Source: Guillardia theta CCMP2712 (taxonomy: Eukaryota; Protista; Cryptophyta). Taken from it: a stretch of 64,000 bases of DNA. The stretch lies in the NCBI RefSeq assembly GCF_000315625.1, contig NW_005434601.1:358011-422010 (forward strand), read 5' to 3'. Below are positions 9,662-34,178 of this stretch, in pieces. The translations under genes and the position numbers were made by a program. Below the pieces are notes generated by a model that was given only the letters and a program-made list of their open reading frames with translations, had not been told where the DNA came from and searched no databases. The stretch's first letter is position 1; the number at the start of each line of letters is the position of its first letter.

Positions 9662-12266
9662 TTACTTCTTCTCCAGTCCCTCATACCTGCACATTCACGT
9701 TACCTCCTCCCTACCCCGCTTCCTCCTCCTCCTCCTCCTCCTCCTCCTCCTCTAGCTCCCCTACCACCTCCTCTATCTTATCATTTCCTTACCCTCCACT
9801 CACTTCCTCTCCTTACCATCTCTGCAGTTTCTCGCAGGCTCGCTCCATGTCTTGGGTGGCACCGGCGAAGCTGAAACGAATGAACTCTCCTCCTCGCGAG
9901 AGGTCGAAGTCCTGCCTCACGTCAGGCGGCCACCATGGGCCTCCTTGACTTCCAGTTCAAGCAGGCGATCGAGAAAAAGGGGATAGTCGAAGAGGAGGCG
10001 GAGGAGGAGGAAGGAGAAGAGTACGTAGAGGAAGGGGAGGACAGAGGAGAAGGGAATACCAAGCCGGGAGTGACGGCAACGGAGCAGCTGCGTCACGAGA
10101 GTGAGGACGGGGGAAGAGGAGGAGGCAGACTCACTCAGCGAGGATCTTCTTGGCGAGCTCCATGCTGTCCTTACAGCTGCATCTCATCTCAAACAAGCTC
10201 TCTCCTCCTCCCCTCCCCCACCCTGCGGGTCCCAGCATGTGCTTGACGTGCGCGTAGATGTAGAAGGCTCCCTGACGTATCGGTCAGAGATGAAAAGTAG
10301 AGGACGGAAGAAAGGGAGAGGAGGATGAAGAGCGAGGGAGGGCGTGGAGAAAGAGAAAGACGAGAGGTGGATGAGATGGAGCATGACGAGGTGAAGGAGG
10401 TTGACGAGGTGGTGGTGGTGGAGGAGGAGGAGGAGGAGGAGATCAGAAGGAGGAGGAGATCAGAAGGAGGAGGAGGAGGAGGAGGAGGAGGAGGAGGAGG
10501 AGGAGGAGGAGGAGGANNNNNNNNNNNNNNNNNNNNNNNNNNNNNNNNNNNNNNNNNNNNNNNNNNNNNNNNNNNNNNNNNNNNNNNNNNNNNNNNNNNN
10601 NNNNNNNNNNNNNNNNNNNNNNNNNNNNNNNNNNNNNNNNNNNNNNNNNNNNNNNNNNNNNNNNNNNNNNNNNNNNNNNNNNNNNNNNNNNNNNNNNNNN
10701 NNNNNNNNNNNNNNNNNNNNNNNNNNNNNNNNNNNNNNNNNNNNNNNNNNNNNNNNNNNNNNNNNNNNNNNNNNNNNNNNNNNNNNNNNNNNNNNNNNNN
10801 NNNNNNNNNNNNNNNNNNNNNNNNNNNNNNNNNNNNNNNNNNNNNNNNNNNNNNNNNNNNNNNNNNNNNNNNNNCGTACGAGGGAGGTGGAGGAGGAGGA
10901 GGAGGAGGATTGCGGACAAGGACCTGTGGCCTGCTGAGCTCGTGGAAGCCAGCCTTCGGGAGTCCATTAAGGAGAACCTGCAAGGCTGTGAGGAGACGCA
11001 GCGAGAAAGGAAGGGAATGAAGCATCGCTGGTCGGAACAAGGGGAAGAGAAAGCCGAGGAGGAGGACGGAGGCGGGGGAGAAGGAGTTAAGCACCTCTCG
11101 GTTTTTCTTGTACCGTTCGACATGTTGTTCCAATTCATCTATGCAATCAAATGCAGCAATTCCTGCAAAGAGAGTCGACGAGACGAGGAAGAGGAGCAGG
11201 AGGCGAGTCAGAAGGAGATCAGTCAGAGGGAGGCGGAGGAGAGAGGAAGGGTCACCAGCGAGCTGGGAGAGGGTGGGAGCGGAGATGAAGAAGTTCTGCA
11301 GGAGATTCTCAAAAGATTGAGCAAGCTGAGGATCCTGGCAGACGATCCATCCCAGTCGCCATCCTGTCATCGAGTAGTACTTGGAGAAGCTGTTGATGAT
11401 CACCTGCTCCTCCTTCAGTTCCCCCTTCCCCCTGCGCCTCCTCCACCTTCTCCGCACGCTCACCGCGTCCTTCTTGAACTGCAGCGCCGAGTCGGCGCGG
11501 CCCTCCATGATGATGCCGTGGTAGATCTCGTCGGAGATGAGGCGGATGCCGTGAGTCGAGCAGCAGGAGCAGAGGTCCTGCATCTCCGACGAGCGCAAGA
11601 TGGTCCCCGTGGGGTTGGAAGGAGAGGCGAGGATGAGCCCATGGATCTTCCCTCCCTTCATCGCTTCTTCCAGCATGGCGCGAGTTGGCTGCCAGTTCGT
11701 CTCCTCCCCCACTGGCAGCTCAACCACCTCAACTCCGAGAGCCTCTAAGATGTTGCGGTAGCACGGATACCCAGGAGAAGCCATTGCCACCCGATCGCCA
11801 TGGTCGAAGGCGCCAGTGAAGGCAACGATGAAGGCTCCACTGCTACCTGTTGTGACCAGCACACTACCTGCATCAACCTCCACCCCGTAGCTTGTCTTAT
11901 AGTGCCCTGCTATCTTCTCCCTCAGCTCCCGCACCCCTGCTGCCTCTGTGTAGCCCAGCTTCTCTTCCCCCTGCAATGCGGCGCTCGCAGCTTCCCTGAC
12001 CTGTAGCTCTGTCAACAACAACATCCATCCTCGCCTCTATCCTGGCTGCTTCCAACTTTACCCTCAACCTCACCCCCTCCGCTCCTTTCCTCCACTTTGC
12101 CTTCCCTCCTTCTCCTCCTCTCCTCTCGTTGTCCTCTCACCTTCCTGGGTGCAGGGGAGGAGGGCTGGCCGACTTCAAGGTGGATGGTCTCCTTGGGGTC
12201 CTTCGCCAGCGCCTCTCGCATCACCTCCATCACCAGGAACGCGCGCGTCCGCCCTCGCTCCGACAT
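9662..12266 (-). CDS. PLP-dependent aminotransferase class I/II (aspartate aminotransferase-like), multi-exon, spans the gap at 10517-10874
   Basis: IHLEVGQPSSPAP, GYTEAAGVRELREKIA, VTTGSSGAF, PGYPCYRN, SPSNPTG, ISDEIYHG, INSFSKYYSMTGWRLGW (PLP lysine), DFDLSRGGEFIRFSFA. Last exon (WYEGLEKK* at 9662, versus a stop at 9813) is uncertain. Confidence 0.9.
10517..10874. other. Scaffold gap flanked by (GGA)n; other gaps at 36004-36103, 54570-54669 and 56512-56611
   Basis: N runs adjacent to simple repeats. Confidence 0.98.
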
Positions 12267-12520: not shown

Positions 12521-13257
12521 ATGCTGTTCTCCCGCCTCGTAAGTTCCTGCTCGCCTCCTCCTCCCGATTCCGCTGCGCCTCTTCCCCTGTCTCCCTGTCT
12601 CCCTGTCTCCCTCTCTTCTTTCTTTCTTGTATTCATCCTTGTATCCTGTTGTATTCTTCAATTGTGTGCCCCCATCCATTTTGTCCTCTCAAACGTTGCT
12701 GGATAGCTTCGTTGTTTCGTTTGAAAACTCGAGGTGCTTCTAGCGCTTTGCTCCGTCTGACTTAACGAGTATTATGATTCATGTTCTAAGATTTTTCACA
12801 AACGTTGTTTGTTTTGAAGATCGTGCATCCTGGTTCACTCGCCTGTAGTTGCTGTTGCCTTGCTTTGGGACAAAAAACGAAGCGATGAAACGATTTGTTC
12901 TTAATCGGATCGTATCTTCGTTTTCAGTGTTGTTTTCTAATTCTCTGGAAAATTCTGTTTTGTTCTGCATTACTTGTCTGAGCAATATCCTGTTCCCTTG
13001 ATCGCATCCTGTGGTATCCAACGGTTGTGGAGGGCTCACATTGTGTGACAGGATTGCTCGTTCCCTGCCTACTTCTACACCCAGCCCATGGCTACTGGAC
13101 CTGGCTTCTACGACAACTTGTGCCCCCAGTCCTGGCAGGATGGCTCCGCTGCCACCTTCACCCTCCAGGATCCCCACCAGCAGAGTAAGAGCTTGTTGAT
13201 TTTTTGTGAGCTTTACCTGACCTGCTTTGTACAGCCTTCGATTGCCCGGGAAACTAA
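12521..13257 (+). CDS. 57-aa micropeptide, copy A (exons 12521-12538, 13052-13184, 13235-13257)
   Basis: MLFSRL|DCSFPAYFYTQPMATGPGFYDNLCPQSWQDGSAATFTLQDPHQQ|TFDCPGN*. Canonical GT..AG junctions are in phase. The paralog at 31418-32368 differs almost only at synonymous sites. Confidence 0.8.
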
Positions 13258-13375
13258 GCTATCCGTTTGTATATGTGATTACGTAAACGGTTTCGAAAAA
13301 CTTCAATCGTGTCTGCGTTTCGGTTTTCTCCCCATCCCTCAACCCGATCTAGAAGATCTATTTTTATTCGTCATG

Positions 13376-15149
13376 TTACAAGGCTACAGCCGCTTGGAGG
13401 ATTCTCCGCCACTGGCAAACACATCATGTCAAATCGAACATATGCTGCCTCAACGCTCACCTGAGCTGACGGAGAGCCGTGATCGCACAGCGAGCAAGGG
13501 CCATCCTACAAACAGCTGTTACTGGCAGCAGCTTACTTGTATCACAAATTACCGATGTGTGATGGGCCTCTCCAGTCAAGGCTTCCATGCTGTTCCCCAC
13601 GTATGTGATCATCCCAAGATCATAGCGGACGGACCAAACCACACTGCTCAAAGACAAAGGAGATCAGCAAAGCGCAAGATGACGAGCAGCGGTGAGATCA
13701 CGAAGAGATAGCAAAAAAAGCTCGAACATACCTGTCTCCGATAGAGTCGTAGTAGGATCTTGCTCCAGGAGGGAGGGAGCCCAAGTGAACTCCATATATT
13801 CTGTTGTCCCTCCCTGATTCCAACATGCTGGGCATGCCCGCGAAGACCGTGTTGTGAACATTCCTCTTGGACCTGTAGAAGGGACCATCCTGACCAGTCG
13901 GGCAGATTAGAACAGCATCTTCCAAGGCTGCCTTTGTCACCTGATATTCCACTGGTCGGATTTGCCACCTGCAACCCGCTAGTGTCACTGACACGACTGG
14001 AGCACCATTTGAAGCAAGCACCCGAAGATCTCGTTGATGACCGAGAGGGAGCCGAACCCGCCGAGGAAGACGATGTTGTTTCCTGACGCTCGGATTACAT
14101 CGGTCCAAGTACATCAAGTTGCGGATCACCAGAGGATGCGTAACCTCGCAGGTCTGTCTTGGAGATCATGTGCAGGTCCGGATAATCGGTGAACGAAGGG
14201 AAGACTGCACCGACCTGTAAGAATCGTGCATCTCCAACATTGATCAGTCACCGATAGTATGTGCAGCTTCATCCCACGCTGCAGCTCTGATTGTAGCAGT
14301 TCGAAAATCTCCGAACGTTTTCACCATCACCTGGTTCAGGAGGAGTGTCAGTGCGGGTGACTCGAGGCTCACAATGCCGGCCACCTCGGGGTGATCTTTT
14401 CGTAAGACGCTCTTGAAGTTGGTGATGGAGTTCGAGTGCCCATAGAGCGAAGTCTCTGGACCAGTGTACAGGTAAATCTGTCGAACCTAGTCAATCCGTT
14501 GACAATGCGTGGCCCCATGGCAGCGGCGACTCACAACGTTCGGGTAGTACTGCGGATGCTCTGGCCGCAGCGGTTCTGGGGAGCAGGTGAGCACGAGGGG
14601 CAGCAAAACATGCGCTCACTCACCCCACTGAACTTTCTGCCCTCCAAACTGCTCGAGCGACGACACTCGAGCACCTCGTTGTTGCGCAAGAAGCACATCC
14701 CCACGCTGACAAGCATGATCGTGAGACGAGTTGCCTCACCAGTTCACAAAGTGCAGGGGATGAAAGTAAACCTGGAAGATCAGGGACGGCATCCTCTCTA
14801 CGAGGAGAAGGGGACATAGTACGAGGGCGGCGAATACAGCCTGCAAGTCGTTGAATCAAGATCCGATTTCTCAATTCCACTACTCTCATCTCAACATCTC
14901 AACGCCGTACATGCAAGTTCAAATATCTCACACTTGAACATCAAGACAAGACGACTGATCAAAAGGGAAGCATCGAAACAAAACAGCACCCAAACCCTCA
15001 GACACGTAGAAACATTTTCTCGATGAGGGCAAAGAGCTCCAGCGAAGAAGACCAACAAGGCTGTGGTCTAATACCGATCTTGACATCATCACTCCACTCC
15101 CATCCACTCTGATCTTCAACATAATACATACGCCTCCATGAAAGCTCAT
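13376..15149 (-). CDS. Secreted-type protein X (copy A), ~270 aa, about 12 exons; putative class-I GATase/ThuA-like fold
   Basis: Spliced: MSFHGG|AVFAALVLC|LLSSPALCEL|RGDVLLAQQRGARVSSLEQFGGQKVQW|EPLRPEHPQYYPNV|VRQIYLYTG...AAWDEAAHTIVFPSF...KTDLRGYASSGNNIVFLG...DGPFYRSKRNVHNTVF...SLPPGARSYYDSIG...VRYDLGMITYVG...WRRILQAAVAL*. Colinear homology with 29678-30897. The 5' exons are less certain. Confidence 0.75.
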
Positions 15150-15770
15150 CGTCCCTCTCGTTTCCCTCCTGCTCCTGCTCCTGCTCCTGCTCCTCCTCTC
15201 ACTCACCGCTGCTCGCAACCCCATGGCGACCCTTGGCCCTTTTCTTCAATGGTTCCTTATTTTACCGGTTCCTTGTATTAGAGATTCCCTCCTGCGGTTC
15301 TTTGTTTCAACGGTTCCTTGTATTCTCCTGAAAAAATCTTGTCCGAACATGAACGAGCAGCCGCAAGTCAGAGGATCAGGGGCTGCGAAGTAGACGGAGA
15401 CGGAGACGGAGACGCAGAGGGAGAGGGGGAGGGAGGGAGGGAGGGAGGGAGGGAGGGAGGGAGGGAGGGAGGGAAGGAGGGAGGGAGTGAGTGAGGGAGG
15501 GAGTGAGGGAGGGAGGGGGGAGAGAGAAGGAGGAAAGGAGGGAGAGGGAGAGACGAGAGGAGAGGCAGGGGGAGGAGAATGGGGGGGGGGGAGGAGGAGA
15601 GAGGCGACGCATCCTTACGGCTGCTCTACAGACCTGGATCTTCGGCTCAAGGACTATCGATGAACTGGCCCTGACTGCACGATTTGGAAGCCTTGGACTA
15701 GAGGAAGGGAGGAGGTGGAGGAAAAGACTAGAGGAAGAGACTTGAGAGCATCTTCAAGGAGAAAGGGTTG

Positions 15771-17066
15771 ATGTCTGCTGCTCTTGCTAGTAGAGCATCT
15801 GGCCTGTTCCTCGGCCTTAAGCTAGGCAGGCGGCCACATGCTCTGTTGCTGCTCCTGGTGCGTTCAATGGGCGCAATGAACGATTGTTTTGCGGGTGGAA
15901 GGCAGACGAGGAGCGTGATGAGGTTGCGAGGAGGATCGGCCGATGGGACCTGGAGGGAGCGCGGCACGGCGTTGGATGATGTCAGAGCGTACAGATCTTC
16001 TGTATTGGGAGAAACGTTCTTCCTTCTGACGTCAAAGGATGCAGACAAGTGGTACGGGTGTCCTCACTGCCAGTTCATCAACGAGCACACGTCTGTTCTC
16101 AAGCAGCACATTCTCAACCATACAAGCAAACCTGCTGGTAACTGCTCTGCGCTACCTGAAGCTGCCTGGAAGATGCGAGCAGTGCTGGCTGCAAGTCAGG
16201 GCGAGGTGCTGGAGTACGTCATCCAACAGCGAGCGGCAGGTCAGGATGCCAACGGCTCGCTCTGGGTTCCTTTCAGCGGTCAGCAGCAGGAGGCGAGGAT
16301 GCGTCGGCAGCGAGAGGAGGTAGGGAGTCAGGGAGGAGAGGAGACGAAGAGTGCGGAGAAGATGCGGAGAATATCTGAAGGGGAAGGCTGGGTCCCTCTT
16401 GTGGTGAAGGTGTACAACCAAAGCAGCAAAGAAATGCTCTGCTTGAACCTGCTCAGGAAGACGGAGACAACGATCCAGGAGATCAAGGAGGAGGTGAGGC
16501 TCAGCACCGGCATCCCAAGTGAGCTCCAACGAGCCGTATGTCGAGGAAGGTTCCTCAGGAACGGCAGCACCTTGCAGGAGTTGGCAGTGAGCAAGGAGGG
16601 TGGCCCTTGCTTGTACATCATTCCTGAGGTGGCAGAGGATGCAGGCGGGGACGAGTCGGGGGGTAGGGAGGCGAAGAACGAAAGCTTGCTGGTGAAGGAG
16701 GACTTGGGCAGGGCCTCTCCTGGGTCACTGCAGTCGAACTTAATGATTGCGAGGATGATTCAGCGAATGAGAAATTACCTGACGGGGGAGAACATCTCGT
16801 CGTCCCCAGTTGATCTCGTCCGCATGAATGAGTCGGCAGTGATCGAAGTGGGAGGGAGGCGACTCAACGTCACCTTCACCACCATCACTCCGACTAACTC
16901 GTCGATGTTCGACCGCGTGCTCGAGTTCAGAATGCCTGCCTTGGACCCGATTCTGCAATCAGACGGGCAGCTAGCTGAGGATGTGAGGGCGGACGGGACA
17001 GGCTGGGGAGGGTTTGGGGGAGGAAAGGAAGAGGGAGGTCAAGACAACGACATTTATGGAACCTAG
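15771..17066 (+). CDS. Protein with hydrophobic leader ending MRLRGG, a C2H2 zinc finger and a ubiquitin-like domain
   Basis: C2H2: WYGCPHCQFINEHTSVLKQHILNHT. UBL: TTIQEIKEEVRLSTGIPSELQRAVCRGRFLRNGSTLQEL. A further 3' exon to 17232 is possible. Confidence 0.7.
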   Translation: MSAALASRASGLFLGLKLGRRPHALLLLLVRSMGAMNDCFAGGRQTRSVMRLRGGSADGTWRERGTALDDVRAYRSSVLGETFFLLTSKDADKWYGCPHCQFINEHTSVLKQHILNHTSKPAGNCSALPEAAWKMRAVLAASQGEVLEYVIQQRAAGQDANGSLWVPFSGQQQEARMRRQREEVGSQGGEETKSAEKMRRISEGEGWVPLVVKVYNQSSKEMLCLNLLRKTETTIQEIKEEVRLSTGIPSELQRAVCRGRFLRNGSTLQELAVSKEGGPCLYIIPEVAEDAGGDESGGREAKNESLLVKEDLGRASPGSLQSNLMIARMIQRMRNYLTGENISSSPVDLVRMNESAVIEVGGRRLNVTFTTITPTNSSMFDRVLEFRMPALDPILQSDGQLAEDVRADGTGWGGFGGGKEEGGQDNDIYGT

Positions 17067-17136
17067 TCAGGCAAGAGAGTTCATATGCTCGAATCAGCCC
17101 GGAGAACCTCTGGAACAACAACTGATACATCGAGGA

Positions 17137-18391
17137 TCAGATGAGGAGAGCGCAGAGGAAGAGGTCCAGACCTGGCTCGGTGTCGGACAAGCTCTCAAGA
17201 GACCTCTCAACGCTCCTCCTGTGCTGCAGTGAGGGAGAGGGAGATCGCACGAGGAGAAAGACCGGAAGAGGAGAGGGATCGACGCGAAGATCGCGAGCCC
17301 GCCGAGGGTGATGAGGATCCTTCTGTCGACCGCATCCTGTGCCGCGTGCGTGAGCCTCGAGCAGCACGATTGAGAGGAGGAGACCTTAAGGCTCTCCAAC
17401 GAGGACAGCGTCATTCCTGCCTGCACCGTAAGGAAGGTGATGGGGGCGAGGCCTGCGGGAAGCGTCAGAAGCGCCATGGCAGCAAGGATCAACCGATGGT
17501 TGCCGACGCCACATGGGGAACGAGGGGGAGGCGAATCAAGGGAGCAGCAAGGTTGATGAAGAAGTTAGGGGTGATGGGAAAGATGCGGATGACTGTGAGG
17601 TAGTAAAACAGCCTCCGCCTGTGATGCCGCACTGCCTCGTCCAACCTCACCAGCTGCTCCAGCAGGAGCCAGCGTACCACAGGGCCTCCGAAGGTCTGGA
17701 AGAAGACGTAGCACAAGGCTGTGCCGATGCTCGTGCAGGCCATGCAGACGATGAAGCCGACGGGGACGCCGAAGAGCGCTCCTCCGAGAAGGTTGAAGAG
17801 AGGAGAGCCTGGGAGAGCGAGGACCATCTTGATGAGGTAGGCCATAGCAAACCCGATGAGGATGGCCCAGTAGTGCTTCGTCTTGTACTCCCCCAGCATG
17901 CCGTACATCTCCTGCACCTCCGAGAGCGACTCGGGGACTTTGAGGCGGGCTCGATCCTTGGCGTCCATGACGGGGAGGACGAAGAAGGAGATGACTATCC
18001 AGCAGGCTGTGGAGAGGATGACGAGGACGAGCACCTGCGACCTCCAACTTCAGCCCCCGCCGTCAGCACGGCGGACCCTCACCTGCCTCCCGCAACCATG
18101 CCGGATGATCATGGCAATGGTACCACTGACACGAGACATCATCCCGCGGCGAGAAGAAGACATGGAGTTGGGAAGGAACTGAGACCTCTCGTCCTCCTCG
18201 TCGCATTCCATACCGTTCTCATGAGCTTCTCCTATCTGAACCAGCCGATCCGTCGCTTCTCCTATCGACAGCCTCGACATCTCTACATCGCCCCTTCCCT
18301 CGCTGGCATGAGCGGGCGACGGCTTCCTGTTGACGGCAGTGTTGTTCCCCCCCTCGTCAGCCTTGCTTCGCTCTCTCGCATCCTCGTGCAT
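17137..18391 (-). CDS. TMEM41B/TVP38-like DedA (SNARE-associated/VTT domain) membrane protein
   Basis: AYLIKMVLALPGSPLFNLLGGALFG, CTSIGTALCY, FYYLTVIRIFPITPNFFINLAAPLI, ASATIG|LAPITFLTVQAGMTL are characteristic of TMEM41/VTT. The 3' end is uncertain (17094-17137). Confidence 0.88.
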
Positions 18392-19194
18392 CTTCTTTGG
18401 ACCACAAACAACTTACCCATCAACCTCAACCTTCCTCGACTGACTTGAGCTCTCGCTTCCTTCAACCACACTCACTCTCTCGTCTACTTGGGAGGTCGCT
18501 CTACGCCATGCTTCCATGAGCCACTTGTATTCCTGCATCAGATGTCATCGCATCGACCCGCTACTCTTCTCCTGTCTGCACAATCCGTAGGCGAAGAATC
18601 TTCTCCTCTTATCTCTTAGCTGATACTTGAGATGTCTAAATTCTATGGCTATGATATTGACAGCAGGAACTGTCTTGTCTGCATTGATCATGACCTCGCC
18701 CTGATCATCAGGTTGAACTCATCTAATTGAGTTTTCCTTTCGGTATCTTGCTTCCTTATCATATCTTCATCTATCGTCCTGCCTTGCCACCATACAATCC
18801 TCAAACAACTCATGAGTAAACGCTCACAATACTACAGAAATGAAAGCGATTCCCGCTCAATTCCAATAGGAATCCAACTATTTTTCGTTTATTCGATACC
18901 ATGCCTCATTCTTCTCTGCTCCTATCTCGGACTCATATCTCTCCCTGTCCCCCTGTTGCTTCCCCGTTGTTCTCTGTGGCAGTCTGCCCGCCTGCCTTGC
19001 CTCTCATCAAGATCGATCACTTTACTTGTGTTGGCATTTCGCTTCTCTCTGAATATCATCCTCTTCCTCTCCCTCTTTCTTCCTCTTCCTTCTCGCTCCC
19101 CTTCCAGCTCTCTCCTCTCCTCTCCTCTCCTCTCCTCCCCCATTTTCCCCGTCTCATGTTTCCCGCTATTTGTTTGAAGAAAAAAGAAAAAAAG

Positions 19195-19233
19195 ACTTTG
19201 AAACTTTTGAAACTTTGAAACTTTGAAACTTTG
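19195..19233. repeat. (ACTTTGAA)~5 tandem repeat upstream of the AKTIP-like gene
   Basis: actttgaaacttttgaaactttgaaactttgaaactttgg. Confidence 0.85.
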
Positions 19234-19344
19234 GAGTGGGTAAAACTTCAGACGTAATACTTGCAAGTTGCGAAATATCATGTCCATGCTCCAGCACAGC
19301 CATGCAGCGCAGGGAGCCTTTGCTGCTGAAGCGCGACAAGCTTC

Positions 19345-21630
19345 ATGCAGAGCTTCTTGATCCCCAGAGCTTCAACTTTCCGCTCACTCGCTCTGCTCCT
19401 CCTGTTCATGGCATCTTCTTTCCTGCTCCTGCCCCTCCTGCTCGTCTCCCTCCCGTTGCTTCGTTTTTCTCCTTCTGTTGCTCCTCTCGCTTCGTCTCGC
19501 CTTCTCCTGCTCAGCTTGCAGCTCTTCACCTGACGACGCTGAGCAGGTCTCAAGGTCTCGACTATGCTGTCAGAGGAGGCGTCGGACCACGATGCTGATT
19601 CCAGCTTCCTGGACATGAGGGCGGTAACCAAAGCACTCCAGGTGATGGCAGAGGGCAGCAGCAGGGAGCTGAGAGACTCGAGCAGGAGAGCGAGTGGCGA
19701 TCAGCGATGGAGAGTGTGACGCCTCAAGTCAAAGATCAGTTCTTGTGGGAGGTAAGGGGAAGAGATGGAGAACGGGAGCCGACGAAAGTCCCGCAGGAAC
19801 TGGAGGCGATTAGAACAAAAGCAGGAGATGTACTGAGCGGAGTATATGTGCTCCCTTCCTTGGGCTCGCTCTTCGGTATCTCATGTCAATGTTTGCCCAT
19901 GAAACATCTCACGTTTCTGTCCTCTAAGAATGGCACGGCGTCATCTTCCTTCGCTCTGGTCTGTTCCAGGTCCAGTAGCAAAGCAAGACCCGCGAGGGCT
20001 GACGGGGCACGTGCAGCATGCGGCCTTCAAGTTCTCCATCAAGATACCCAGCAGCTACCCCAACGCAGGTGCCGATGCTCTGCTGCTTCTCCCGCAGCTC
20101 ATGGGATGTGGCCAGCGCCGAAGCTAAACTTCATCTCGAACATTCCTTTCCATCCCTTCATCAATCCGAGAACAGGCAGACAGTCTGCGCTGCTGGGAGG
20201 AGAAGACTAACAGGACTCGCAGGGCTTGTTGACTTCCACTATCTGCTGATGACGGTGAGTGGGAGGAGCGTCGAGGAGGCTCGCGTGACATCGGCGAAGG
20301 AGTCGAACCCGCTGGGCGAGTGGAACTCAAAGGAGCATCGACTGTGAGCTTTTTGTCGCAAGTTCTGCTCCCTCCTGAGGCAGGGCTTGCAGGCACAGTC
20401 TGCTCGTAGCCCTCAAGAGCTTGTTCTATCCGAATTTCAACGATGGGAGGATCAAGGTCCAGCTCTTGCTCGTCCTCCTCCCCACCTGACGCTTTCTTCC
20501 AGGAGCTCCATGGCGACCCCCAAGTGAACCCGTTCCAACTGTTCAATCCCAACTTCCAGGGTGGTGAGGCTCTGCTCATCTCTCCTGAAACTTGTCTGCG
20601 CAGCCAGACGACTGATCGTGGTCAGGCGGGGAGCGCGCGGGAGTCCTGAAGAGCTCCGTGCAGAATGAGAGAGCGATCAGGTGACGAGGAGAGGGAAAGA
20701 GCAGTTGAAGAGGAAGGGAAGGAAGGGGAGACAGGGGGCACATGACGTTAGTGATAGAGGAGGAGAGTTGGGACGTTGGATACTTACGTGCATTACTCAG
20801 CATCTTGACGAAGAATCTGATGTGGTGGAGGAAGAACGGAAAGGCTTTCCCTCTCCCCTCTCAGGTTTGCGTGACATTGGGAGCAGGCGAGCGAGTCAGG
20901 GAGATAGAAAGAGCAAGGGGGGTCAACCTCTTCAAACTGTCGACGGAGATGATCGCGGTTCCTCCCTCCCTCCCTCCCTCCCTCCCTCCCTCCCTCCCTC
21001 CCTCCCTCCCTCCCGGTGAGGTAACGACAGCACAGATGATCAGGCTGGATGACCGCCCTCTGTCCAACGAGGTCGAGGGTCTGCTGGTGCAGCTCCAGGA
21101 CGAGTCGCTCAACTTCCGGCATCACGTCGGTCTGTGGAGCTGCCGCTCGAGCCTGTCGCCCCTGACTTCACGTGCAGAGATGTGTGTGGGAGAGAGCCAG
21201 GACTGCCTCAAGTACAACCTGGGAAGCTTCTTCCTCCGTATCCTCCTCCTCTCTTCTCTCCTCCCCTCTCACTCCCCTCCTCTCGCAGGCTTGCGGAACG
21301 ATGTGCTCGAAGTGAACTCGTCGCAAGCTCAGCATCTCTTGGCCGGTGACGACGCAGCTGCGGTTGATCCAGATGGCGACACGAGCTATGGTAGCGTGCG
21401 GAAGGGGAAGCGAGGAAGAGGAGGGGGCAAGGAGGACAAGAGTGGAAGTGAGGAGTAGGAGGAGGAGGAGGAGGAGGAGGAGGAGGAGGAGGAGAGGAGT
21501 ACTTGTCATCACAAGCAGAACAGGTGCCAGCATCAGCAGTCACGTCGCGGCACTTCTGAGCCTGGCGGGGATAACGGCAAGTGTGGTAGAGGAGCGAGAA
21601 GTGCGTGACAACTGCTGCAGGTTGGAAGAG
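19345..21630 (+). CDS. AKTIP/FTS-like ubiquitin E2 variant with hydrophobic N-terminal leader and uncharacterised C-terminal extension, multi-exon
   Basis: LSGVYVLPSLGSLF|EWHGVIFLRSGLFQ|..AFKFSIKIPSSYPNA|..PKLNFISNIPFHPFINPRT|GLVDF...EWNSKEHRL matches the AKTIP UEV consensus. Exons from 20750 on appear to continue in frame. Both ends are approximate. Confidence 0.7.
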
Positions 21631-22982
21631 GAGAGGAAGACAAGCAGGAAGAGGGACAGGGGGAGGCGCAGTACGAGGGGGAAGGGAAGGGAAGGGAGGA
21701 GGAGTGGATGAGAGACGAGGAAAAGGCAGAAGAGAGGAGGGAAGAGGAGGAAAACGAGACTAGGGGTGAGGAGGCTGGAGGGAAAGATAGCCAAGACAAA
21801 GAATGACCAAGTTAACAGTTAAGCATTTCTCTCTCCTTCCCTCCTAGTTCGATTTTTCCTTCTCCTCCCTCTTTGATAATTATCTTGGAGGAAACTCAAA
21901 CGTCCAGGAACATCTTTATTTATTACAGTTGGAAACAACTTTGAATTGAGTGCACTACGCAGCCTGCTCCTCTCCTCTTGACTGTACATCCTCTCGTTTC
22001 CTGTCCTGTCCTGTCCTGTCCTGTCCTGTCCTCTCTTCTCCTCTCCTTTCTTCTCCTCTCCTCTCCTCTCCTCTCCTCTTCTTGTTGATGTTGCGATTCT
22101 TTTTGTTGGGGCTCTGACCCGGGGAATTCGTCGGGAGTGTGGGGGGTTACCATCAACAAAGTGGGTAGGGGTACAATTGATGTTCAGTAAAGTACCAGTA
22201 AAGGTGGGTGATTTTTGGTATAAAGTGAGGGTAGTGTTGCTGTTGGTTGCTTTCACACTGGGTAGGGGTAGTTCATGATTGATTCTTCCTAGGTAGGGTG
22301 TTTTGACAAACCGAAACAATGTAGGGGATGATGAGGGAAGGGGAGGAGGAAGAGGAGGAAGAGGAGGGAGGGGGAGGAGGAAGGAGGAGGGGGAGGAGGA
22401 GAGGGGAAGAGGAGGAGGGAGAAGATGATATCAGAAGTACCAGCAAAGAGAGGGTGAAGACAGTATCAGATTTCCAACTGATTTGCAAAGTTTGGGAAAG
22501 GATATGGATAGGAGTGGGAGAAGTATCAAATGAAAGTTAGGTGTGATAGGCAACCAAGTGAAGGGCTCAACACCAGCAGATGTGCCATGTATGAAACATC
22601 ACAGAGGAGCAGGAGAATGCTTCATGGAATGTCAGAGAAGGAGAAGTCTGCTTTTTGACAGAACGAGCTTGAACAGATTAGATCCAGGAACTCCTCTATT
22701 ACTGCAGAGATAGAGGGACCCAAAAGCTAATACAAGACTGAGAAGAAGCATCTGCAGAAGGGAAGAGAGCCTCTGTGAGATAGACAAAGAGCTGTAGACG
22801 CGTGTCGGCGGCTCACCTGGTGGTCTGAAGTGAACGGCAGCAATGCAAACGGACATGAGCTGGACGATTCAACGTGCCTCGAGCCCTTGAAGCTCCCCAG
22901 TGACCGTCGGAGTTTGTTTGTGTATCGACCAGCTTGCATTCAGATCCTTGTGAGGACGCAATGGCGAAGGAGGAAGAGAGCA

Positions 22983-25900
22983 ATGGGGGCTCGCAACGCA
23001 AGCCTGGAACTTATGTGAGCTGAGGGGAAACGGTGGCTGGTCGTTGCTGATGCAGGGAGCAGGAGCTGCAGAAGCAGAAGAGTATGGCTCTCCTGCAGCA
23101 AGGTGAGCGAGGAGGAAGAGCTGCCGTCTCGTCCGATGACAAGTCGAGGCAGGAGGGAACACTCTTGCCAAGAGGCTGTCGATCGCAGCAGGGGTGAGGT
23201 ACAAGGAGAGCCTTGACATGGACCAGGTCTCGAAGCTCTTCCGCAAATCAAAGGCGCACGAGTTCTGGATCTACATCGTCTTCCTCACCGTCTTCAGCGC
23301 TAGCTCGCTGCAGCAGCGACCCGTGGAGGAGACGTACGACCTCATCCACCAGGTGTACGACGGGACTGTCACTGGCTCCTCCTACATCTCGACTACTTAC
23401 TTCAAGAACATCGGCGGTCAGTGGGTGGGAGCGAGAGGGAGGAGAGCGAGAGCAGGAGGAGGAGCAATGGGAAGGGAGTGGAGAGACGGAGGAGGATGGC
23501 AGAGGGCATGGGGGAGGAGAGGAGGGAGAGGAAAGGGGAGGGCAGGAGGGAGGCCACGGGGGAGAACATGGAGGAGAGGAGGAAGGAGAGGAGGAGTGAC
23601 TCCTGGCAGCGGGCTGACGGGAAGGACGCAGACATCGGATCGATTGATGACTTCTGGGCATGGATGACGGAGGTTCCCCCGCAGTTCCTGTTCCAGTACA
23701 ACTGGTACAACGGGAGCTCGTTCGAGCCGGATTTCCAGGGGGTGAAGTGGCGGGTCCTGCAGAACAACCTGATTGTCCAGCCTCCTCGCCTCCGCCAGAT
23801 TCGCATCGAGCCCAAGAAGTGCGAGGTGCCGAGGAGGATGTCGAGTCAGGAGTACGGGGGAGTGATCAGCCAGGGGAGCTACAACGGGACCAACCTGTAC
23901 ATGACCGACGGCATCTCAACCTGCTATCCCAGGATGCCGAGCGCCACGATCAGTAAGGAGACCATCCAGGGGCTGAAGATTGACAACGGGACCATCTCGG
24001 TGGTTCCCCTCCCGTACAAGAGCGCCAAGGAGCTCAACTCAAAGTCCTTCACGTCGAGAGGGAGCACGACACCGATCACGTACGAGGGGGGAGGATACGT
24101 GCAGGACTTCCCGCTCAACATCTCCAACGACGAGTTCAAGAGCATGTTGGCCGCGCTCAAGGCCATGAGGTGGACAGACAGGCAGACGCGCGCTGTCGTC
24201 TTCGACTGGGTCATTTACAACCAGGAGCTCAACACGTTCCTCTCCGTCCGGCTCGTCTTCGAGTTCCAGCCTCACGGCTTCGTGGTGGGCTACCAGAGCC
24301 TCCGGGCGATGAGGATGGGGTACGTTAGGGCCAACGACGTGTTCCTGCTGATAATGGATGCGGTTGTGTACGGCATCGTCTTCTTCTCCATCTTCAACTC
24401 CTGCTACAAGGTGTATCTGCTCAGCTGGGACTTCTTTGGGTACTTCTGGAATGTGGTCGACCTTATGAACTACCTCTTCTTCCTTGTGTCCCTCTACTAC
24501 AAGGTGATCTTCTTTCTTGAGACGCAGACGTTTGTCTCCACCCCGGTCAGCAGTGCTGTGGAGTATGTCGACTTCGACTACGTCGGCAGCATCTACAACC
24601 TCATCGCCTCCTGGAACGGTTTTAACGCGCTCTTCACCTGGATGAAGATATTCTCCTTCCTCAAGTTCCTCAGCTCTGCTGCCGAGCAGCTCATAGGTGA
24701 ACATGCGTGGAGGAGGAGGAGGAGAAGCAGATGATGATGACGACGACGATGGAGATGAAGAGGAAGAGGAAGAGATAATGATGATAGTGTTGTTGATGTT
24801 GTTGTTGTTGATGATGATGATGATGATGATGATGATTATGCTTCTGGCAGAAACAATCGCTAAGGCAGGGGCAAATCTTTCTATCTTCGCGGGCCTCTTG
24901 TTTGTTGTCCTCTGGGCCTACGCGCAAACGATGTATGTCTCCTTCGGTGCCTACATTTCAGACTACAAGGCCCTGTAAGCTCTTCTATGCTTTCTCTCTT
25001 CCTGCTTCTGCTCCTCCTGCTTCCTGCTCCTGCCCCTTCTCCTCCCCCTTCTTTTTGTCTTTTTCCTCGTCCTCGTCTTCTCCAGCTCACCTCCTCCCAG
25101 CTACAGCGCGTGCGTCAACACGTTCAAGGCTCTGCTGGGAGGGTTCGACATCGACCAGCTGAACGCCAGCAACGCGTACCTGGGCCCGCTGATCTACATC
25201 ACCTTCCTCTTCGTTGCCTTCTTTGTGATGCTCAACATGTTCCTTGCCATCATCGCCAAGACCTACGATGACGTCAGCAACCAAGAGACCGTCGACCCCA
25301 TGGCCTTCGAGTTCCGCGAGGGCATCCTCTTCTCCCTCCGCGTTCCCCTCCGCCTCCTCGGCTTTTCCTCCATCCTCGACCGTCACTTCCGCAAGGACAA
25401 GGACCAGGTCTCGGGCTTCTCCTCCCTCAAGCAGGACGACGACAGGCAGTCTTCCGTCATCGCCTCCTCCCTCATCGCAGGAGGCAAGACCAAGAGCCAG
25501 GGCTCCCTCTCCAGCGATCCTCCAGCTCAGAAGCTCAACGGCAAGTCGCCCTCTGAGGTCATCTTCAAGGACGTCAGCAAGGACGAGAACCCGCCGCTCC
25601 AGTCCCTCGGCAGCAACCGAAGAGCAAGTAGCCAGTCGCACATCCTCCACTTTCTTCCCCCCTCCTCCCTCCCCCCTCCCCCGTCCTGCCTCCTGCCTCC
25701 TGCCTCCTGCCTCCTGCCTCCTGCCTCCTGCCTCCTGCCTCCTGCCTCCTGCCTCCTCCCCCCTTCCTTCTCCTTCCTCCCTCTCCCCTCCCCCCTCCTT
25801 CCCTTCTCCCTCCTCCCTCTCCTGCTGCCACCCTTTTTCCTCGTCATTCTCTCCCTTCTCACAGTGCTGTCAGACTACAACAACGACGGAGCCTCTGCAG

Positions 25901-27097
25901 CTGTGGATTCCAAGGGCAGGCAGGCGACAAAAGTCACCATGTTGGTGCCCGACGAGGTTCTGCTGGGACTCCTTTCGTCTGTGAGGGACTTGAGGTACTT
26001 CACTTGATCCTCCTGCTGTCCCCTCCCTCCTCTCCCTCCCTCCTCTTCCCTCCCTTCCTTCTCTCTATCCATCCCTTCTCTTTCTCCCCTGCCCTCCCCT
26101 CCCCTCTCTTCTCCTCTTCTGTCCTGTCCTGTCCTGTCCTGTCCTCCTCTCCCCTCAACTCCTCTCCTCCTGGTCTCTCTCCCTCGTCCCTCCTTCGCTT
26201 TCTCTCACCTTCCTCAGCAACAACGTGAGGGAGCTCGGCGGTCGCTTGGACGACCTCAGCAAGTTCGGAGCAGAGGCCGTGAGTCTCGTCTACTCACCCT
26301 CGGCAGGGCTGATCGCTACAGCAGGCAAGGCAGCTGGAGAATGAGCTGGAGGAGACTAGGAGGGGACATGCTTTGAGGGAGGAGGAGGAGGAGGAGGAGC
26401 CGAGAGAAAGAGCCCCGAGAAACTACCACAGTCATTCTCTTCCTCTTGCTCACAGAGAGCCGTACCATCCCCTCCAGCAGAGCCCCATCAGAGCTGAGAT
26501 GTCCTGGAATCCTCCAGGTGCTGTGATCCCTTCCCGCCTTGCTTCCTCTCTCTTCTCCCCTCTTTTCCTCTCCTCTCCTCTCCTCTCCTCTCCTCTCCTC
26601 CCCCGCCTGCTGAGCTGTTCACGGCTGCCGTCAGATCACTTCAGGACTTCCAAGTGGCCCGAAGACGATCGCAGGTCTCGCTTCCTCCTCTCTCCTCGCG
26701 CCTCCTCAACCTGCCCAGGAGCCTCCGCAGCCCCATGGTCGACTGGTCCGGCATGTCGCCAACCTCGAGGATGCTGGCAGCCACGGCCGACATGATCTCA
26801 GCGGTGGCGGTTCAGAGGTGAGGAGCAGCTGGGCAGGGAGAGTCTCTGCACCTTCAGATCCCCCTGACTCATCGAAGGGACACCAGTCTGCGGGGCGACG
26901 CGAGGATGGCAACCCCAGACCTCGGGACCCGCAGCTACACGAGGAGGAAGCCGGCGAAGGGAGGATGGGAGAACTCGCCGGTGGAGCAGGTGGAGATCGA
27001 ACAAGGAGGTAGTGAAGTGACTGCTGAGCAGGAGGGAGTCAAGAAGCTCCGGTTTCATGCCGCACACGAGGAGGAGGAGGAGGTAGCCGTAATGTGA
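22983..27097 (+). CDS. Polycystin-2 (PKD2/TRPP)-like cation channel, multi-exon
   Basis: EFWIYIVFLTVF, SIDDFWAWM, NNLIVQPPRLRQIRIEPKKC, YEGGGYVQDF, RWTDRQTRAVVFDW, FWNVVDL, WMKIFSFL, LGPLIYITFLFVAFFVMLNMFLAIIAKTY. Start may lie further 5'. Confidence 0.9.
25685..25756. repeat. (CCTGCCT)n heptamer repeat in a PKD2 intron
   Basis: About 10 units, directly visible. Confidence 0.85.
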
Positions 27098-27247
27098 TGA
27101 CGTGTTGATATCTGATGCGATCTCAGGACGACTCGACCCCGAGGCTTCCGGCATATGTAAAGTAGGAGAGGAGGAGGGAGAGGAGGAGGGAGGCGAGGAG
27201 GGAGCAGACGATGTTTCACTCACTTCATTCTCCTCTCATCATCCCCA

Positions 27248-28131
27248 TCACCTCACGAGCTCGATCACGCTATCCACACTCTCTACAATCACATCCGCGT
27301 TCCCCCTCAGATCCTCCTCCGTCCCCACGCCGGACAGCACCCCGATGCTTCCTGCCACCCCCGCTGTCTTGCCATCCGCAGATCAGCGTTGGTGTCTCCT
27401 ACGATGATCGTCTCCTCCGGCCTCACACCGAGTTTCTTGCAGAAGTTCCACGCGTTGTCCGGCGCTGGCTTGGGCACGTTGAACGAGTCATCCCCGCAGA
27501 TGGAATGATGCACCATGCTAGAAATCCCCAGGCTCCGCAGGTTCAGCTCCGTCGGCCTCCTCGCGTCCGACGTGCACACCCCAGTCATGATGCCCATCCT
27601 GTGCAGCGTTTGGAACAAGGTCTTGGTGCACCTGCTGATGGGGGACACCTCTCCCTCCTCGCACTCAGCCCAGCACTCCCTCACCGCCTCCCTTGCGTCT
27701 CCTTCCTTCATCCCTCCTTGCTCTGTCAGACAAGCTTCCACCGCCTTTCTGATCAAGGGCTGCGCCGCCCACGCCATGAGCGACTTCTCTCCGCGTACCT
27801 TCCTCAACTCCATGTCGTACCCAAGGGTGTCTGCGAGAGGAGTTCGCAGCTGCTCTCCGCACTTGCTCACGAAACGAGAGATCAGATCGTCTGCCCACTT
27901 GCTCCAAGTTGCGTCGAAGGAGATGAGGGTCCCATCCTTGTCAAAGATGACGAGCTTCACTTTCTGTGTCTGAGAGGGAGCAACCATGGTTTCAACCATC
28001 GGGCTCATCGCGCTGTAGGAGGCTCGGCTGATCGAGCTTGCATTCTGCAGCAGAGGAGGTCTGAGGGAAGGGACGACAAGTCCCTTTGAGTGAGCGATAG
28101 CTCCTGTAGCGATGCTCTTGATGAGAGACAT
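27248..28131 (-). CDS. HAD-superfamily hydrolase (phosphoglycolate phosphatase-like) with mitochondrial-type presequence; apparent 1-bp frameshift near 27372
   Basis: LVIFDKDGTL (motif I), GVCTSD (II), PKPAPD (III), IIVGDTNADL (IV). The conserved tail GKTAGVAGSIGVLSGVGTEEDLRGNADVIVESV lies in a shifted frame. Confidence 0.85.
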
Positions 28132-29677
28132 GTTTCAAGCTTCGAAGCGCGGGTTTCGTTTGATGACAAAAAGGTTCCTACAAGTCTTCCTCGTTGACGC
28201 CTCGTCTTCCAAGTGTAAGAGTTCTGTTCGTCTGCCTGTCTTCCTCCTCTCTGTGTGTCTTGACCCGTGTCTCTGAACTTGTTCTGCTCGTCGTGCTCTC
28301 CCCTGAGACTCTCTCGCTCTTCTACAACTTGGGTTTGCACTTTCGGAGAGACAAACAGGCGTACCCACTGTACCCTTTCTCATCACCCACCCCAATGGTC
28401 ATGGACCACCAATTGCTAAAAATCACCCCTACTCTTTACTATTTACACCCACCACTTCCTCGGACCATAAAACCTTCTTCTAAATAGAACCCTACATTAG
28501 ATCACCCTACCCCCTCAAAAGGGCCAGGTACCAGCTACGCCTTCATACCCCACCCAATCACTGCAATTGCACCCCAAACCACACCATTCTGGTACCCTAC
28601 CCTTCAGTTCATCACCCCCCTTCCTCCATACCTACCATACTATTTTTCAGAATTTTGTACTAAACGTACCCCTATGAAAGTACCCTACCTCTACTATTTC
28701 TAAGTACTCACACTCAAGTACCCCTGTCTCCCCCTGGCCCCCCATTTAGCCGCCCACCAATCATGATTTATACACCCCCACCCCATTGTACAAAACAAAG
28801 TACCCTTACCATATTTTTTTTGTTTAGAAAGGGGGGTATTGAGGATACCCCCACCCATCCCATCAGATGAGTGAGAAACCACCCCCTTAGAAACCAGTTT
28901 TATACCTTTATGAGGCTCTCTCACCACCCGTCCTCCTGTTCTTCGTGTGTGACTACGCCTCACACCGGGTGACCGTCGGGCCCGATCACTCAGTACGGGA
29001 GTGACTAACTTACAGTTAGTAAGTTCCGACAGCGGCGGTGGCAATCGGCACACTGAGTGACCGTAGCCGCACAGCCAGTGACAGTTGACCGTCCGACCGT
29101 CTTACGCCGTACCGGCGGTGACTCGGACGGTGCAGGCCGGGCTCCGAAGAGGCGGCCGCACTGCACACTGACGCGGCCCGGCGAGCGCCCGCGGCCGCGC
29201 CGCGGCTCTCGACTCGGTCCGGGGCCGACGCCGGACACAGGCTGTGACCCGACGGTCCGAGCGAGTCCGAGATCGTACGCCGGGGGGTGCCGCAGTGACT
29301 GCCGGGTGCGGCAGTGATCGGACCGTGACCGACCCGGTCACGGTGACGGTGAGTCACTGTGCCACAGCCTGACCGTCGGACTCACAGCCTAGTCCGAGGA
29401 GGCTGACGGTGAGGGCCGCCCGGCGGCCGGCGGGCCGCTCGGAGTTACTTTGGCATGGTCACCAAGTCTCCTGCAGGCGGGCTGACTCAGTGAGTAACTC
29501 AAACTTGTACTCCGTCGGTTATGAGCCGCAGGCCGCTTCACCGGCCCCGCGGCTGTCACTAACGCCGTACGGTCGGAGGCCGGGCCGGGCCCGGGCGCCG
29601 GGCCCGGGCCAGCCTGTTTCGGTTGGATTTTGTAACGGTCAGGCGCGAATCGTCGCCTGCCCCTTGGCGCGTCCGCC

Positions 29678-30897
29678 ATGTCCTCCTTTTCCTCACGCGC
29701 CGTCAACACAGCCGGCGCAGCAGGCGCTCTCGTCGTCCTTCTCGCTCTGGCAGCATGGCAGGGATCCTCCTCCTCCTCCTCTGCGGCTTCGAAGGTTGGT
29801 TTCCTCTGATACTCTGGACCCAGCATGTTGAGGGCTGTGCTATGCTGTTCATTGCGGACTGTATGGAATGAGTCATGAAATAAGGAGACTAGAGTGTTGT
29901 ACCGTCCTCTCTCTGTCTGTGATGACCTGATGATGCTGATATGTCATGGTCTCTGATCCTTGACGTCCGTCGGTCATCTTTGTTCTGAGACTTGCTGGCA
30001 GTTGGCCGCTAACAGGCAGCAGACCACCGAGCTCTCGTTCCTGCAAACCTCTGGTGGGTGGCAGCAAGGAGAAGAGGGCGCTACCTTGCTGCATGACTAA
30101 CACTGCGACAGCTTTCGTGGACCAGATTTACATGTACGCCGGACTTGCCGTGGACAACAAGCACGAGACCGGATTTATCGCCAAGGAGATCAGAAAGCAC
30201 AATTATCAGACTGTGAGCTCACAGCGACTTCTTGCCTCTTGTCCTCAAGTTGTCACAGATGGTTCGCCTCTTCACTTCCCTGGATGATGCCACCTTCCGG
30301 GCTGTCTTGTGGGATCAGGCTGTTCACTGCCTGGTGAGCCTTGACCCTCCTCCGCCTCGCCTTCCACCTTCTTGTTGACTCCGGGTAATGTTAACCTGAT
30401 CCGGCAGGTTTGGCCGCCTTTTGTTCGCTACCCTGGTATCAGTGAGACCGCCAAGACTGATCTCCGTGCTTACACTGCTGCTGGAAACAACGTAAGCACG
30501 CACATGGTGACCTCGCCCTCTGGTCCTCACAGAGTCGTGCTTGCAGGTGGTCTTCTTGGGCAACTACGTTGCTGTGCAGTTCATGAACGATGTCTATGGA
30601 TTCCAGTTGACCGATGACTATCAGAACGGTCCTTACTACCGTAACGACCGCAACGTCCGCAACACTCCCTTCCAGTACCTCCCGTCTCGCGTGGAGCAGG
30701 CTTCAATAGAGACTTATGCTGTCAAGTCAAGATCTCTCCCTCCTGGCGGCAAGTCCATGCTCGACACTCTGGGGGCTACTGTTGCGTTCGTCATCCGCTA
30801 TGACTTGGGTACCGTCTGTTACATTGGATACAACTACAACACTCCGTTCCATGCAGACCAATGGACCAGAGTTCTCCACTGTGCCATTGACATGTAA
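29678..30897 (+). CDS. Protein X (copy B), paralog of 13376-15149, with N-terminal signal/anchor; putative GATase/ThuA-like fold
   Basis: MSSFSSRAVNTAGAAGALVVLLALAAWQGSSSSSSAASK|QTTELSFLQTS|AFVDQIYMYAG...NYQT|MVRLF...WDQAVHCL|VWPPF...KTDLRAYTAAGNN|VVFLG...GPYYRNDRNVRNTPF...SLPPGGKS...IRYDLGTVCYIG...QWTRVLHCAIDM*. Introns are canonical. Confidence 0.8.
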
Positions 30898-31417
30898 TAA
30901 AGTGAGTTTGGGGAGACTAAGAGAAACATCAGTCAGCAAGCTCTTCACACCCTTTGCAAGCGTAATGTTTGCCATGATGTTCAATTTTGTCATGCCTTCC
31001 AACAAAGCGACGAAAATGACTATCTCCACAAAATATTTGTCTACAAGTTCCTTCTTTATTGTTTGTGTACAAACAGCTTTTTGTATTTCAATATTGCAAT
31101 GTCCAGCTCAAGAAACAGTAGTCATGTCACTTTCCAATCCTCGCCCGCGATTTTTTATGGATATCTCTCAGAGTGGAGCATGAACTCAACCCTGCACTTA
31201 AATCGGAAAGTGGAAAGTGCGTGAATTACTTCGTGCAGTTGTATTCACCTCAGTGTAGAGAGAAGCAGACTATGTTGTTGATGTCCAGTACCTCGAGATA
31301 GGACGCGACTAAAAGACAGGTCGGATGCGGACGTGCAAGAGTGGGATCAATTGTCGAATACTTCTCAGTCATTTCATTAAGCCAACATAGCTTCTTGCTC
31401 GATCCTCTAGAACTAAT

Positions 31418-32368
31418 TTAGTTGCCCGGGCAGTCAAAGGCTGTACAAAGCAGGTCAGGTAAAGCTCACAACCAACATCAACAAGCTCTTACTCTGCTGG
31501 TGGGGATCCTGGAGGGTGAAGGTGGCAGCGGAGCCATCCTGCCAGGACTGGGGGCACAAGTTGTCGTAGAAGCCAGGTCCAGTAGCCATGGGCTGAGTGT
31601 AGAAGTAGGCAGGGAAGGAGCAATCCTGATGCAAATTGTCAGGCAGTGATACTTGTGAAATTTTGTTTTCAGGAACATGCACCAACACCGTTACTCACAA
31701 CCAGATGACAAAGTGTAAGTATTTGACCTTACTCTCAGAGATTATCAATTGGATACAGACAAAAAAATCGGAACTACGAGTTGTTTGAATCTATTTCGCA
31801 GTCAACAGAAACAAACTACCCTGCAAGAAAGGAGTCGAACACCTCGTGTTCAGACAATTCTGATGCCTCAAGGGAATACAGAACCAAGAAGTATTGCAAA
31901 CAGGGGATCAAGAACATGGGGATCAAGAAAATTGTCTCAGAGACAATGGATATGGTCATCAATTTAGAACAACTGAATATTGTAGAGTGGCAAAAAGGTC
32001 AAACATTGAGAGAACTTTCATAACAAACTAGTTCGATAACGCCTTTTCACAACGACCATGGTTGCGACGAAGAGATATCACAACAATAAGAGAAGTACAA
32101 AAGAAGTAATATGGTCATACGAAGTTAATACGGGAAGAAATACAACAGTGAGAGGGAAGCATCCGCACAGAGGGGGCCAGGTGTAAGACAAGCGCGAATC
32201 GACCAGATAAGAAATCAGAAGCCAACGTTGGAGTGGAGGGAAGAAGAGGGCACAAACGCTAGAGAATGAAGGGGACAATGATGAGGAGAGATTCTGCATA
32301 GCAGGAGAGGCCGGAAGGCCACGGAAACGGGCGGCATGAGCGATACTCACAAGCTTGGAGAAGAGCAT
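31418..32368 (-). CDS. 57-aa micropeptide, copy B (exons 32368-32351, 31625-31493, 31440-31418)
   Basis: MLFSKL|DCSFPAYFYTQPMATGPGFYDNLCPQSWQDGSAATFTLQDPHQQ|TFDCPGN*. Exon structure is identical to copy A. Confidence 0.8.
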
Positions 32369-33504: not shown

Positions 33505-34178
33505 TTATCGGCAGGAGGGGTTCAACTCAGGGTCGCACCAGGCGTACTGCACCTTGCCGGCAACTCCGTCCATGTTGGGAGGGAACGCGGGTCTGGCACA
33601 TGAGTCAGCGAGCACAACTGATCAGGAAAGGCAAAGCGCTCACCCCATGGGGCCGGTGGATCCGATCATGTCGTGAGCAGCCTGATGCCAGATAGCGTTC
33701 TGCTCGCGTTGTCAGAAGCTTCCATCCACACCACAACAACAGCAGCTTCACTCACCGCCTTGAAGTAGTCGAGGTCTCTGGCGCAGTCTGCAGGATCAGC
33801 GCAGAACTGGGAAGCAGGATCCAGTTCAAGGGACTGGAGCCTGGCCTGTTTCAACGCTGGTCTCCTGCGGTGAATGGCCTTGATGTGCTTGGACTTGTAG
33901 GCGGAAGATCCGAGGAAGGGAAGCTGTGGGTTGATGTTCAGCCTGGAAGCCACGAACTTGGTGGGTAGAGAGTCCCCCCGAGCAACGAGCACAGCGTTGA
34001 TCAGCGCATCAGTGCCATCGTCCTTGTCGACCTGAGAAAGAGAAACTCTGCGAGAAGAAGCGATGACCACAACCCCCACGACAAGAAGAGCTGCGCCCAC
34101 GGCGAGCAAGACAGACTTCTTCTGATTCTTATTGCTGGACACCTCAGGTGCTCCTCCAAAGAAGGTACCGTCTGTCAT
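33505..34178 (-). CDS. Type II membrane-anchored precursor-like protein with C-terminal 4-Cys domain (3 exons)
   Basis: MTDGTFFGG...KKSVLLAVGAALLVVGVVVIASSRRVSL...KQARLQSL-ELDPASQFCADPADCARDLDYFKA|NAIWHQAAHDMIGSTGPMG|PAFPPNMDGVAGKVQYAWCDPELNPSCR*. Both introns are canonical and in phase. Confidence 0.7.

Follow-up and report, generated by a model that had tools for sequence, protein, structure and literature searches.

A near-invariant cryptophyte peptide and its old tail-to-tail linkage with a family of predicted GATase-fold proteins in Guillardia theta

We analysed a 64,000-nucleotide (nt) stretch of the Guillardia theta CCMP2712 genome (positions 358,011 to 422,010 of contig NW_005434601.1, forward strand; hereafter the window), which lies on contig 73 of the 669-contig, 87.1-Mb assembly. 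It carries two modules of two genes each: in module A, a gene for a 57-amino-acid (aa) peptide (+) and gene X (-) stand tail-to-tail, and in module B, gene X' (+) and a second peptide gene (-) do so. X and X' encode putative membrane-anchored proteins with a predicted class I glutamine amidotransferase (GATase)-like fold. The surprising part of the locus is the peptide, which is ultraconserved; its pairing with the X family is real and old, and a working partnership of the peptide with X and X' is a plausible proposal.

To assess conservation, 34 peptide loci were compared, drawn from the G. theta genome and from marine and freshwater metagenomes, the metagenome loci having no species assignment. 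The residues after the leader, a core of 51, were identical across these loci except for one Gln-to-Asn change at three of them, and the mean proportion of nonsynonymous differences (pN) in the core was 0.003, compared with a mean synonymous proportion (pS) of 0.30. An 18-nt exon 1 was found at 32 of the 34 loci; it encodes M-L-F-[S/Q/T]-[Q/K/R]-L, and the intron 1 that follows it spans 323-725 nt in each case, compared with about 50 nt for introns typical of these genes. All Phe and Cys codons and nearly all Tyr, Asn and Gln codons were in the C- or G-ending form, a bias suggesting that the peptide is highly expressed. G. theta holds four full copies (two on contig 73, one each on contigs 46 and 58). 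The mature peptide has a mass of 5.7 kDa and an isoelectric point of about 4, and is rich in Pro, Gly and aromatic residues; the 57-aa product P0053 contains no Val, no Ile and no repeats.

The joined peptide was present in a Cryptomonas paramecium transcriptome, with one core change, and the peptide was also found in Hanusia datasets. The Goniomonas avonlea peptide was 82% identical and retained Cys8 and Cys54, but not Cys30. The joined sequences in C. paramecium and G. avonlea support splicing in these relatives and, as Goniomonas lacks a plastid, the gene in the host lineage predates the plastid. Searches of Pfam and NCBIfam gave no family match to the peptide, none was found among PDB sequences or in the ESM Atlas, and no relative was seen in viral contigs; a literature search found no paper naming the peptide or X genes. 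Two weak matches in prokaryotic genomes, together with locus L090, were set aside as chance, and P0068 and P0070 proved to be bacterial proteins wrongly clustered with the peptide. Modelled alone from a shallow alignment, the peptide adopted no confident fold (predicted local distance difference test, pLDDT, 45).

A Cys-free paralogue (GUITHDRAFT_110115) lies on contig 43 at 443488-443696 (L092:488-696, - strand). It has a longer leader ending in Q-M-L and a C-terminal M-L-W motif, and is kept in Rhodomonas, Cryptomonas and Geminigera; its annotation appears to omit the first exon. Marine and freshwater cryptophytes, but not G. theta, have an additional old peptide locus that is situated close to a protein kinase gene (L099-L105, L081, L110). 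Two peptide entries, P0031 and P0039, are filed in NCBI under the name of an archaeal metagenome-assembled genome, probably through cryptophyte contamination of that bin.

A preliminary description of the window, made from its letters alone, had proposed both modules, and both were recovered when the peptide, X and X' gene structures were re-derived from sequence. The features are as follows (window positions):

12521..12538, +, peptide A exon 1 (18-nt exon), six-residue leader MLFSRL
12539..13051, +, peptide A intron 1, 513 nt
13052..13184, +, peptide A exon 2, coding for the invariant core
13235..13257, +, peptide A exon 3, including the stop codon
13049..13257, +, 211-nt tract including non-coding intron 2, 96% identical to 31418-31628 (-); putative gene conversion
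13376..15224, -, gene X (GUITHDRAFT_164877) in about 12-13 exons, encoding a signal anchor, a linker and a predicted GATase-fold domain
29678..30897, +, gene X', six exons: signal anchor, linker ending TTEL, predicted GATase-fold domain
29678-29794; 30002, 30020 or 30023 to 30053; 30112-30212; 30259-30333; 30408-30491; 30547-30897, +, exons of X'
31418..31440, -, peptide B exon 3, including the stop codon
31493..31625, -, peptide B exon 2, coding for the invariant core
32351..32368, -, peptide B exon 1, encoding the leader MLFSKL; the intron 1 behind it measures 725 nt

The peptide A introns are GT-AG, and the spliced peptides A and B translate exactly to P0053 (GUITHDRAFT_154359) and P0033 (GUITHDRAFT_154362), both annotated as hypothetical; they differ by a single residue, within the leader. 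The X' exons join into one open frame of about 259 aa, and X and X' are 42% identical across 175 aligned residues. Public annotation covers at least three of the four module genes (both peptides and X), and no X' gene model was found there by accession. X had been given a start at 15149, but the annotated start is 15224; both candidates yield an 18-nt exon 1, and the latter, with its gccATG context and GTGAGT donor, is probably correct. A short first exon, described earlier for all four genes, holds for the peptides and X (18 nt) and fits X' only loosely (117 nt). Comparison with orthologues suggests two errors in the X annotation: a retained 51-nt intron (13890-13940) is probable, and a spurious 45-nt exon (13461-13505) is possible. 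In 12 runs guessed to be RNA, 10-49% of module A words were present, a share that exons-only content would give, although this is a weak indication.

The identity between peptide genes A and B is confined to the 211-nt tract, and their first introns do not align. Their pS was 0.07, compared with 0.25-0.32 for other pairs. The near-identity is thus best attributed to purifying selection plus a conversion tract, not to recent duplication, and the two inverted copies would have undergone gene conversion. Intron 2 is absent on contigs 46 and 58 and in L117, is present in L074, and bears no relation to locus type; this scattered presence suggests repeated loss or conversion among copies.

The X family occurs in cryptophytes and Goniomonas, with bacterial PEP-CTERM surface proteins as more distant relatives, and has at least 26 loci in G. 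theta. To characterize its fold, we used a model of the family member P0080, which is neither X nor X' (pLDDT 92). Its best match was the ThuA-like structure 1T0B (Z 16.0, root-mean-square deviation 3.3 over 194 residues), 3RHT gave Z 14.9, and Foldseek matched it to the class I GATase-like fold at E 1e-6. These matches support the GATase-like assignment made from sequence and, by this predicted ThuA-type fold, X and X' belong to the class I GATase-like superfamily. No Pfam or NCBIfam family, ThuA, DUF4350 and Glyco_hydro_42M included, matched the cryptomonad members above cut-off; the bacterial homologue P0138 scored 16.5 against DUF4350 (cut-off 30.4) and matched Glyco_hydro_42M weakly too. 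Searches of PDB sequences and the ESM Atlas likewise yielded no match to X that passed the cut-off.

The canonical Cys-His-Glu triad is absent, since no Cys, His or Glu column reached 70% among the aligned X family. The nucleophile-elbow Cys is not present: with the elbow placed from alignment and secondary structure rather than superposition, the residue following its Gly is Gly, Ser, Asp or Asn in the 25 aligned members. A His-x-Glu near the C-terminus was not found in the aligned family either. With neither of these marks of a catalytic class I GATase or gamma-glutamyl peptidase conserved, the proposal that X is an enzyme acting on the peptide is not supported. Some polar residues are conserved in the family (Arg52, Asp81, Asn105 and Asp163, model numbering).

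Hydrophobic N-terminal segments bear out the membrane anchor or signal proposed for X and X': full-length members carry a hydrophobic anchor, mostly after basic residues, and then a variable linker. Read by eye, the linker ends in a T-x-x-L motif, and conservation starts there; cleavage may occur at this motif. The end of the peptide leader and the Q-M-L of the Cys-free paralogue resemble it. The mature X' domain showed no differences from its contig-46 paralogue in 203 aa at a pS of 0.67, and was 94% identical to a metagenomic orthologue. In the family tree, X clusters with a contig-41 paralogue and X' with another set; the two are therefore not sister paralogues. On contig 20 (160928-169375), X-family domains recur in tandem at intervals of about 1.6 kb, at least six of them within the 3,625-aa open frame of a giant protein.

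Each of the two pairings recurs in other cryptophytes, which establishes the age proposed for them. The peptide stands tail-to-tail with an X orthologue in L040/L041 and L088, reached from the peptide side, and in L117, reached from the X side; it is paired with an X' orthologue in L074. A third G. theta module, X' plus peptide, lies on contig 46, and its flanks hold no counterparts of the window's flanking genes. Stop-to-stop distances in the modules are about 120-800 bp. The tail-to-tail pair was kept in other cryptophytes for three of three G. theta locus types, compared with none of six flanking adjacencies (Fisher p 0.012, in a small and partly selected sample, as two of the three pairs had prompted the comparison). 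The pairing has thus been retained while flanking genes changed, as had been surmised. Nor are two adjacencies expected from abundance alone, another point on which the preliminary description stands: for two independent adjacencies among four peptide genes, P is ~3e-5, given at least 26 X-family loci and a gene count that we take to be ~24,800. This value excludes independent origins only, so one adjacency copied as a segment explains it.

Several observations weigh against an obligate module or against a partnership. An X-family gene neighbours the peptide at 3 of the 13 informative metagenome peptide loci, and only 3 of the at least 26 G. theta X-family loci lie beside a peptide gene. Six other X paralogues had no short-leader gene or peptide nearby; among look-ups from the X side, L125 and L129, which belong to other X clades, lacked the peptide, and L116 and L132-L134 are cut off before the relevant position. 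The contig-58 peptide gene has a different convergent neighbour, an unrelated signal-anchor gene present as a single copy (G000:C58:94137-94830; L026:5635-6328, - strand), which is equally conserved. This gene is in place in L055/L064/L065, and at 70% identity it occupies the corresponding position in another cryptophyte, with conservation beginning after Q-x-x-L; it has no Pfam match. No natural fusion of peptide and X domain was found. The weak point of the structural reading favoured below is the leader, which at six residues falls short of a classical signal peptide; the peptide may thus be kept out of the compartment faced by the X domains. Most peptide genes and most X-family genes lack a neighbour of the other kind, and an obligate module is therefore not supported.

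Between the modules lie unrelated genes:

15768..28131, intervening genes: ubiquitin-like (+), VTT-domain (-), an unclassified stretch near 19.3-21.2 kb, polycystin-type channel (+), HAD hydrolase (-)

Five such genes had been counted; four were identified by Pfam, and the fifth corresponds to the unclassified stretch. The ubiquitin-like domain protein (15768-17066, +) has a leader ending in L-R-G-G. Outside the four module genes, 15517-15554 is a simple repeat, and an assembly gap (a run of N, ~10517-10880) falls within an aminotransferase gene upstream of peptide A. A gene at 33505-34178 (-), some 1.1 kb away from peptide B, encodes another signal-anchor precursor, in which a Q-S-L motif precedes a short Cys-containing segment.

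Tentatively, we favour a reading in which the peptide and X/X' are abundant structural components of the cell covering or of extrusomes, are trimmed by a common route, and stay linked through co-expression or dosage. The peptide would be a very abundant structural subunit of one such host-cell structure. Several gene copies would supply the dosage, the short leader with its final Leu would be cut off, and folding would depend on packing against other copies of the peptide or a partner. X and X' would be membrane-anchored, lumen- or outward-facing, non-catalytic GATase-fold proteins that may help to build the same structure. They would enter the trimming route of the peptide, a route that is probably shared because the conserved X domain starts after the similar T-x-x-L. 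One adjacency would have undergone an early segmental duplication into the X and X' modules, followed by single-gene X duplications and by a further duplication of the X' module to contig 46, and the linkage would persist because the genes are co-expressed or dosage-linked. High expression, cleavage, protein contact and selection on linkage are what we infer under this reading, and the cell covering or extrusome is the location that it predicts. In a bolder version, which we regard as rather unlikely, the peptide and X' would be partners in an undescribed self-assembling lattice of the cell surface or extrusome, constrained like histones or ubiquitin, and would enter a cryptomonad-specific sorting and trimming route through a short Leu-ending motif for which a six-residue leader suffices.

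Nearly as likely as the favoured reading is neutral microsynteny, in which the peptide is important and abundant and its neighbours are incidental: one chance adjacency was duplicated, and close tail-to-tail pairs are seldom broken. The short stop-to-stop distances fit this explanation, as do the equally conserved, unrelated neighbour of the contig-58 peptide, the other neighbourhoods kept by other peptide loci (for example, with the protein kinase) and the unpaired state of most copies of both families. However, the pairing persists on two non-sister X clades, and the second duplication, to contig 46, did not keep its flanks; flanking adjacencies were not conserved in any of the six cases. 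An improbable explanation is that the genes belong to one regulon and their products to different places, being co-expressed in surface building and linked for chromatin or termination, with the peptide cytoplasmic, for instance as an inner periplast part lipid-anchored through its terminal cysteines, and making no contact with the X domain. The lack of a signal peptide, the terminal cysteines conserved to Goniomonas and the signal anchors carried by several convergent neighbours of different families are in keeping with it, and head and tail cysteines of epiplast proteins have been discussed as palmitoylation sites (PMC6212826). Against it, the end of the leader resembles the motif after the X-family anchors, and the Cys-free paralogue keeps the core, so the cysteines are not essential to the peptide family.

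That X and X' modify or cleave the peptide, as enzyme and substrate in a ribosomal peptide natural-product cluster, appears very unlikely. The fold superfamily does contain amidotransferases and peptidases, the peptide has a leader-plus-core layout, and the four polar residues are conserved in the X family. However, the elbow Cys and the His-x-Glu are not conserved, the X next to the peptide has no triad, the peptide-X linkage is missing at most loci, and the peptide core is invariant; cores of ribosomal peptide precursors normally vary. In addition, the close relatives in bacteria are PEP-CTERM surface proteins, and giant surface proteins carry the domain as repeats. Scarcely credible is a recent local inverted duplication, or two independent chance adjacencies. 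The 96% identity of peptides A and B over 211 nt points that way, but it is confined to the tract, with intron 1 unaligned, and X and X', at 42% identity, are not sister genes. The orthologous modules in L040/L041, L074, L088 and L117 already refute this explanation, and the P of ~3e-5 speaks against independent chance.

In the literature searched, the builders of the cryptomonad periplast, scales and ejectisome accessories are largely unidentified, and a near-invariant 5.7-kDa peptide with several copies and strong codon bias is a concrete candidate for a cell-structure protein. Because it is invariant, it can also serve as a simple metagenome marker for cryptomonads. If X' proves to be a partner, a eukaryotic cell covering would have taken over, as a scaffold, a non-catalytic GATase fold shared with bacterial surface proteins; should the linkage be neutral, there is still an ultraconserved microprotein to be explained.

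Among known systems, ejectisins are reportedly of about 6 kDa. G. theta has 16 tri genes, against four peptide copies, and Tri/ejectisin proteins occur both in cryptophytes and in Goniomonas (PMC3982174); the peptide is like them in being multi-copy and in its range. The ejectisome ribbon proteins (Tri1, Tri2 and Tri3) are homologues of bacterial Reb; the peptide gave no Pfam RebB match, and its accessions are not among the listed Tri1 accessions. Paramecium trichocyst matrix precursors are cut to small acidic polypeptides that crystallise in a secretory organelle (PMC2119969). The peptide is likewise small and acidic, but its precursor is tiny and has no signal peptide, so that the likeness is an analogy only. 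Epiplastins are larger, of low complexity and rich in Val and Ile; the peptide, with no Val or Ile and no repeats, is by its sequence not an epiplastin. Epiplastins (articulins, alveolins) are candidate cryptophyte cortex proteins and often have terminal cysteines (PMC6212826). The predicted fold of the X family resembles that of non-catalytic members of the class I GATase-like superfamily, namely 1T0B, STM3548 (2GK3), the GH42 trimerisation domain, the IFT52 N-terminal domain and DUF4350, from which the family is set apart by an identity of only ~10%, its N-terminal anchor and a lineage-specific expansion to at least 26 loci.

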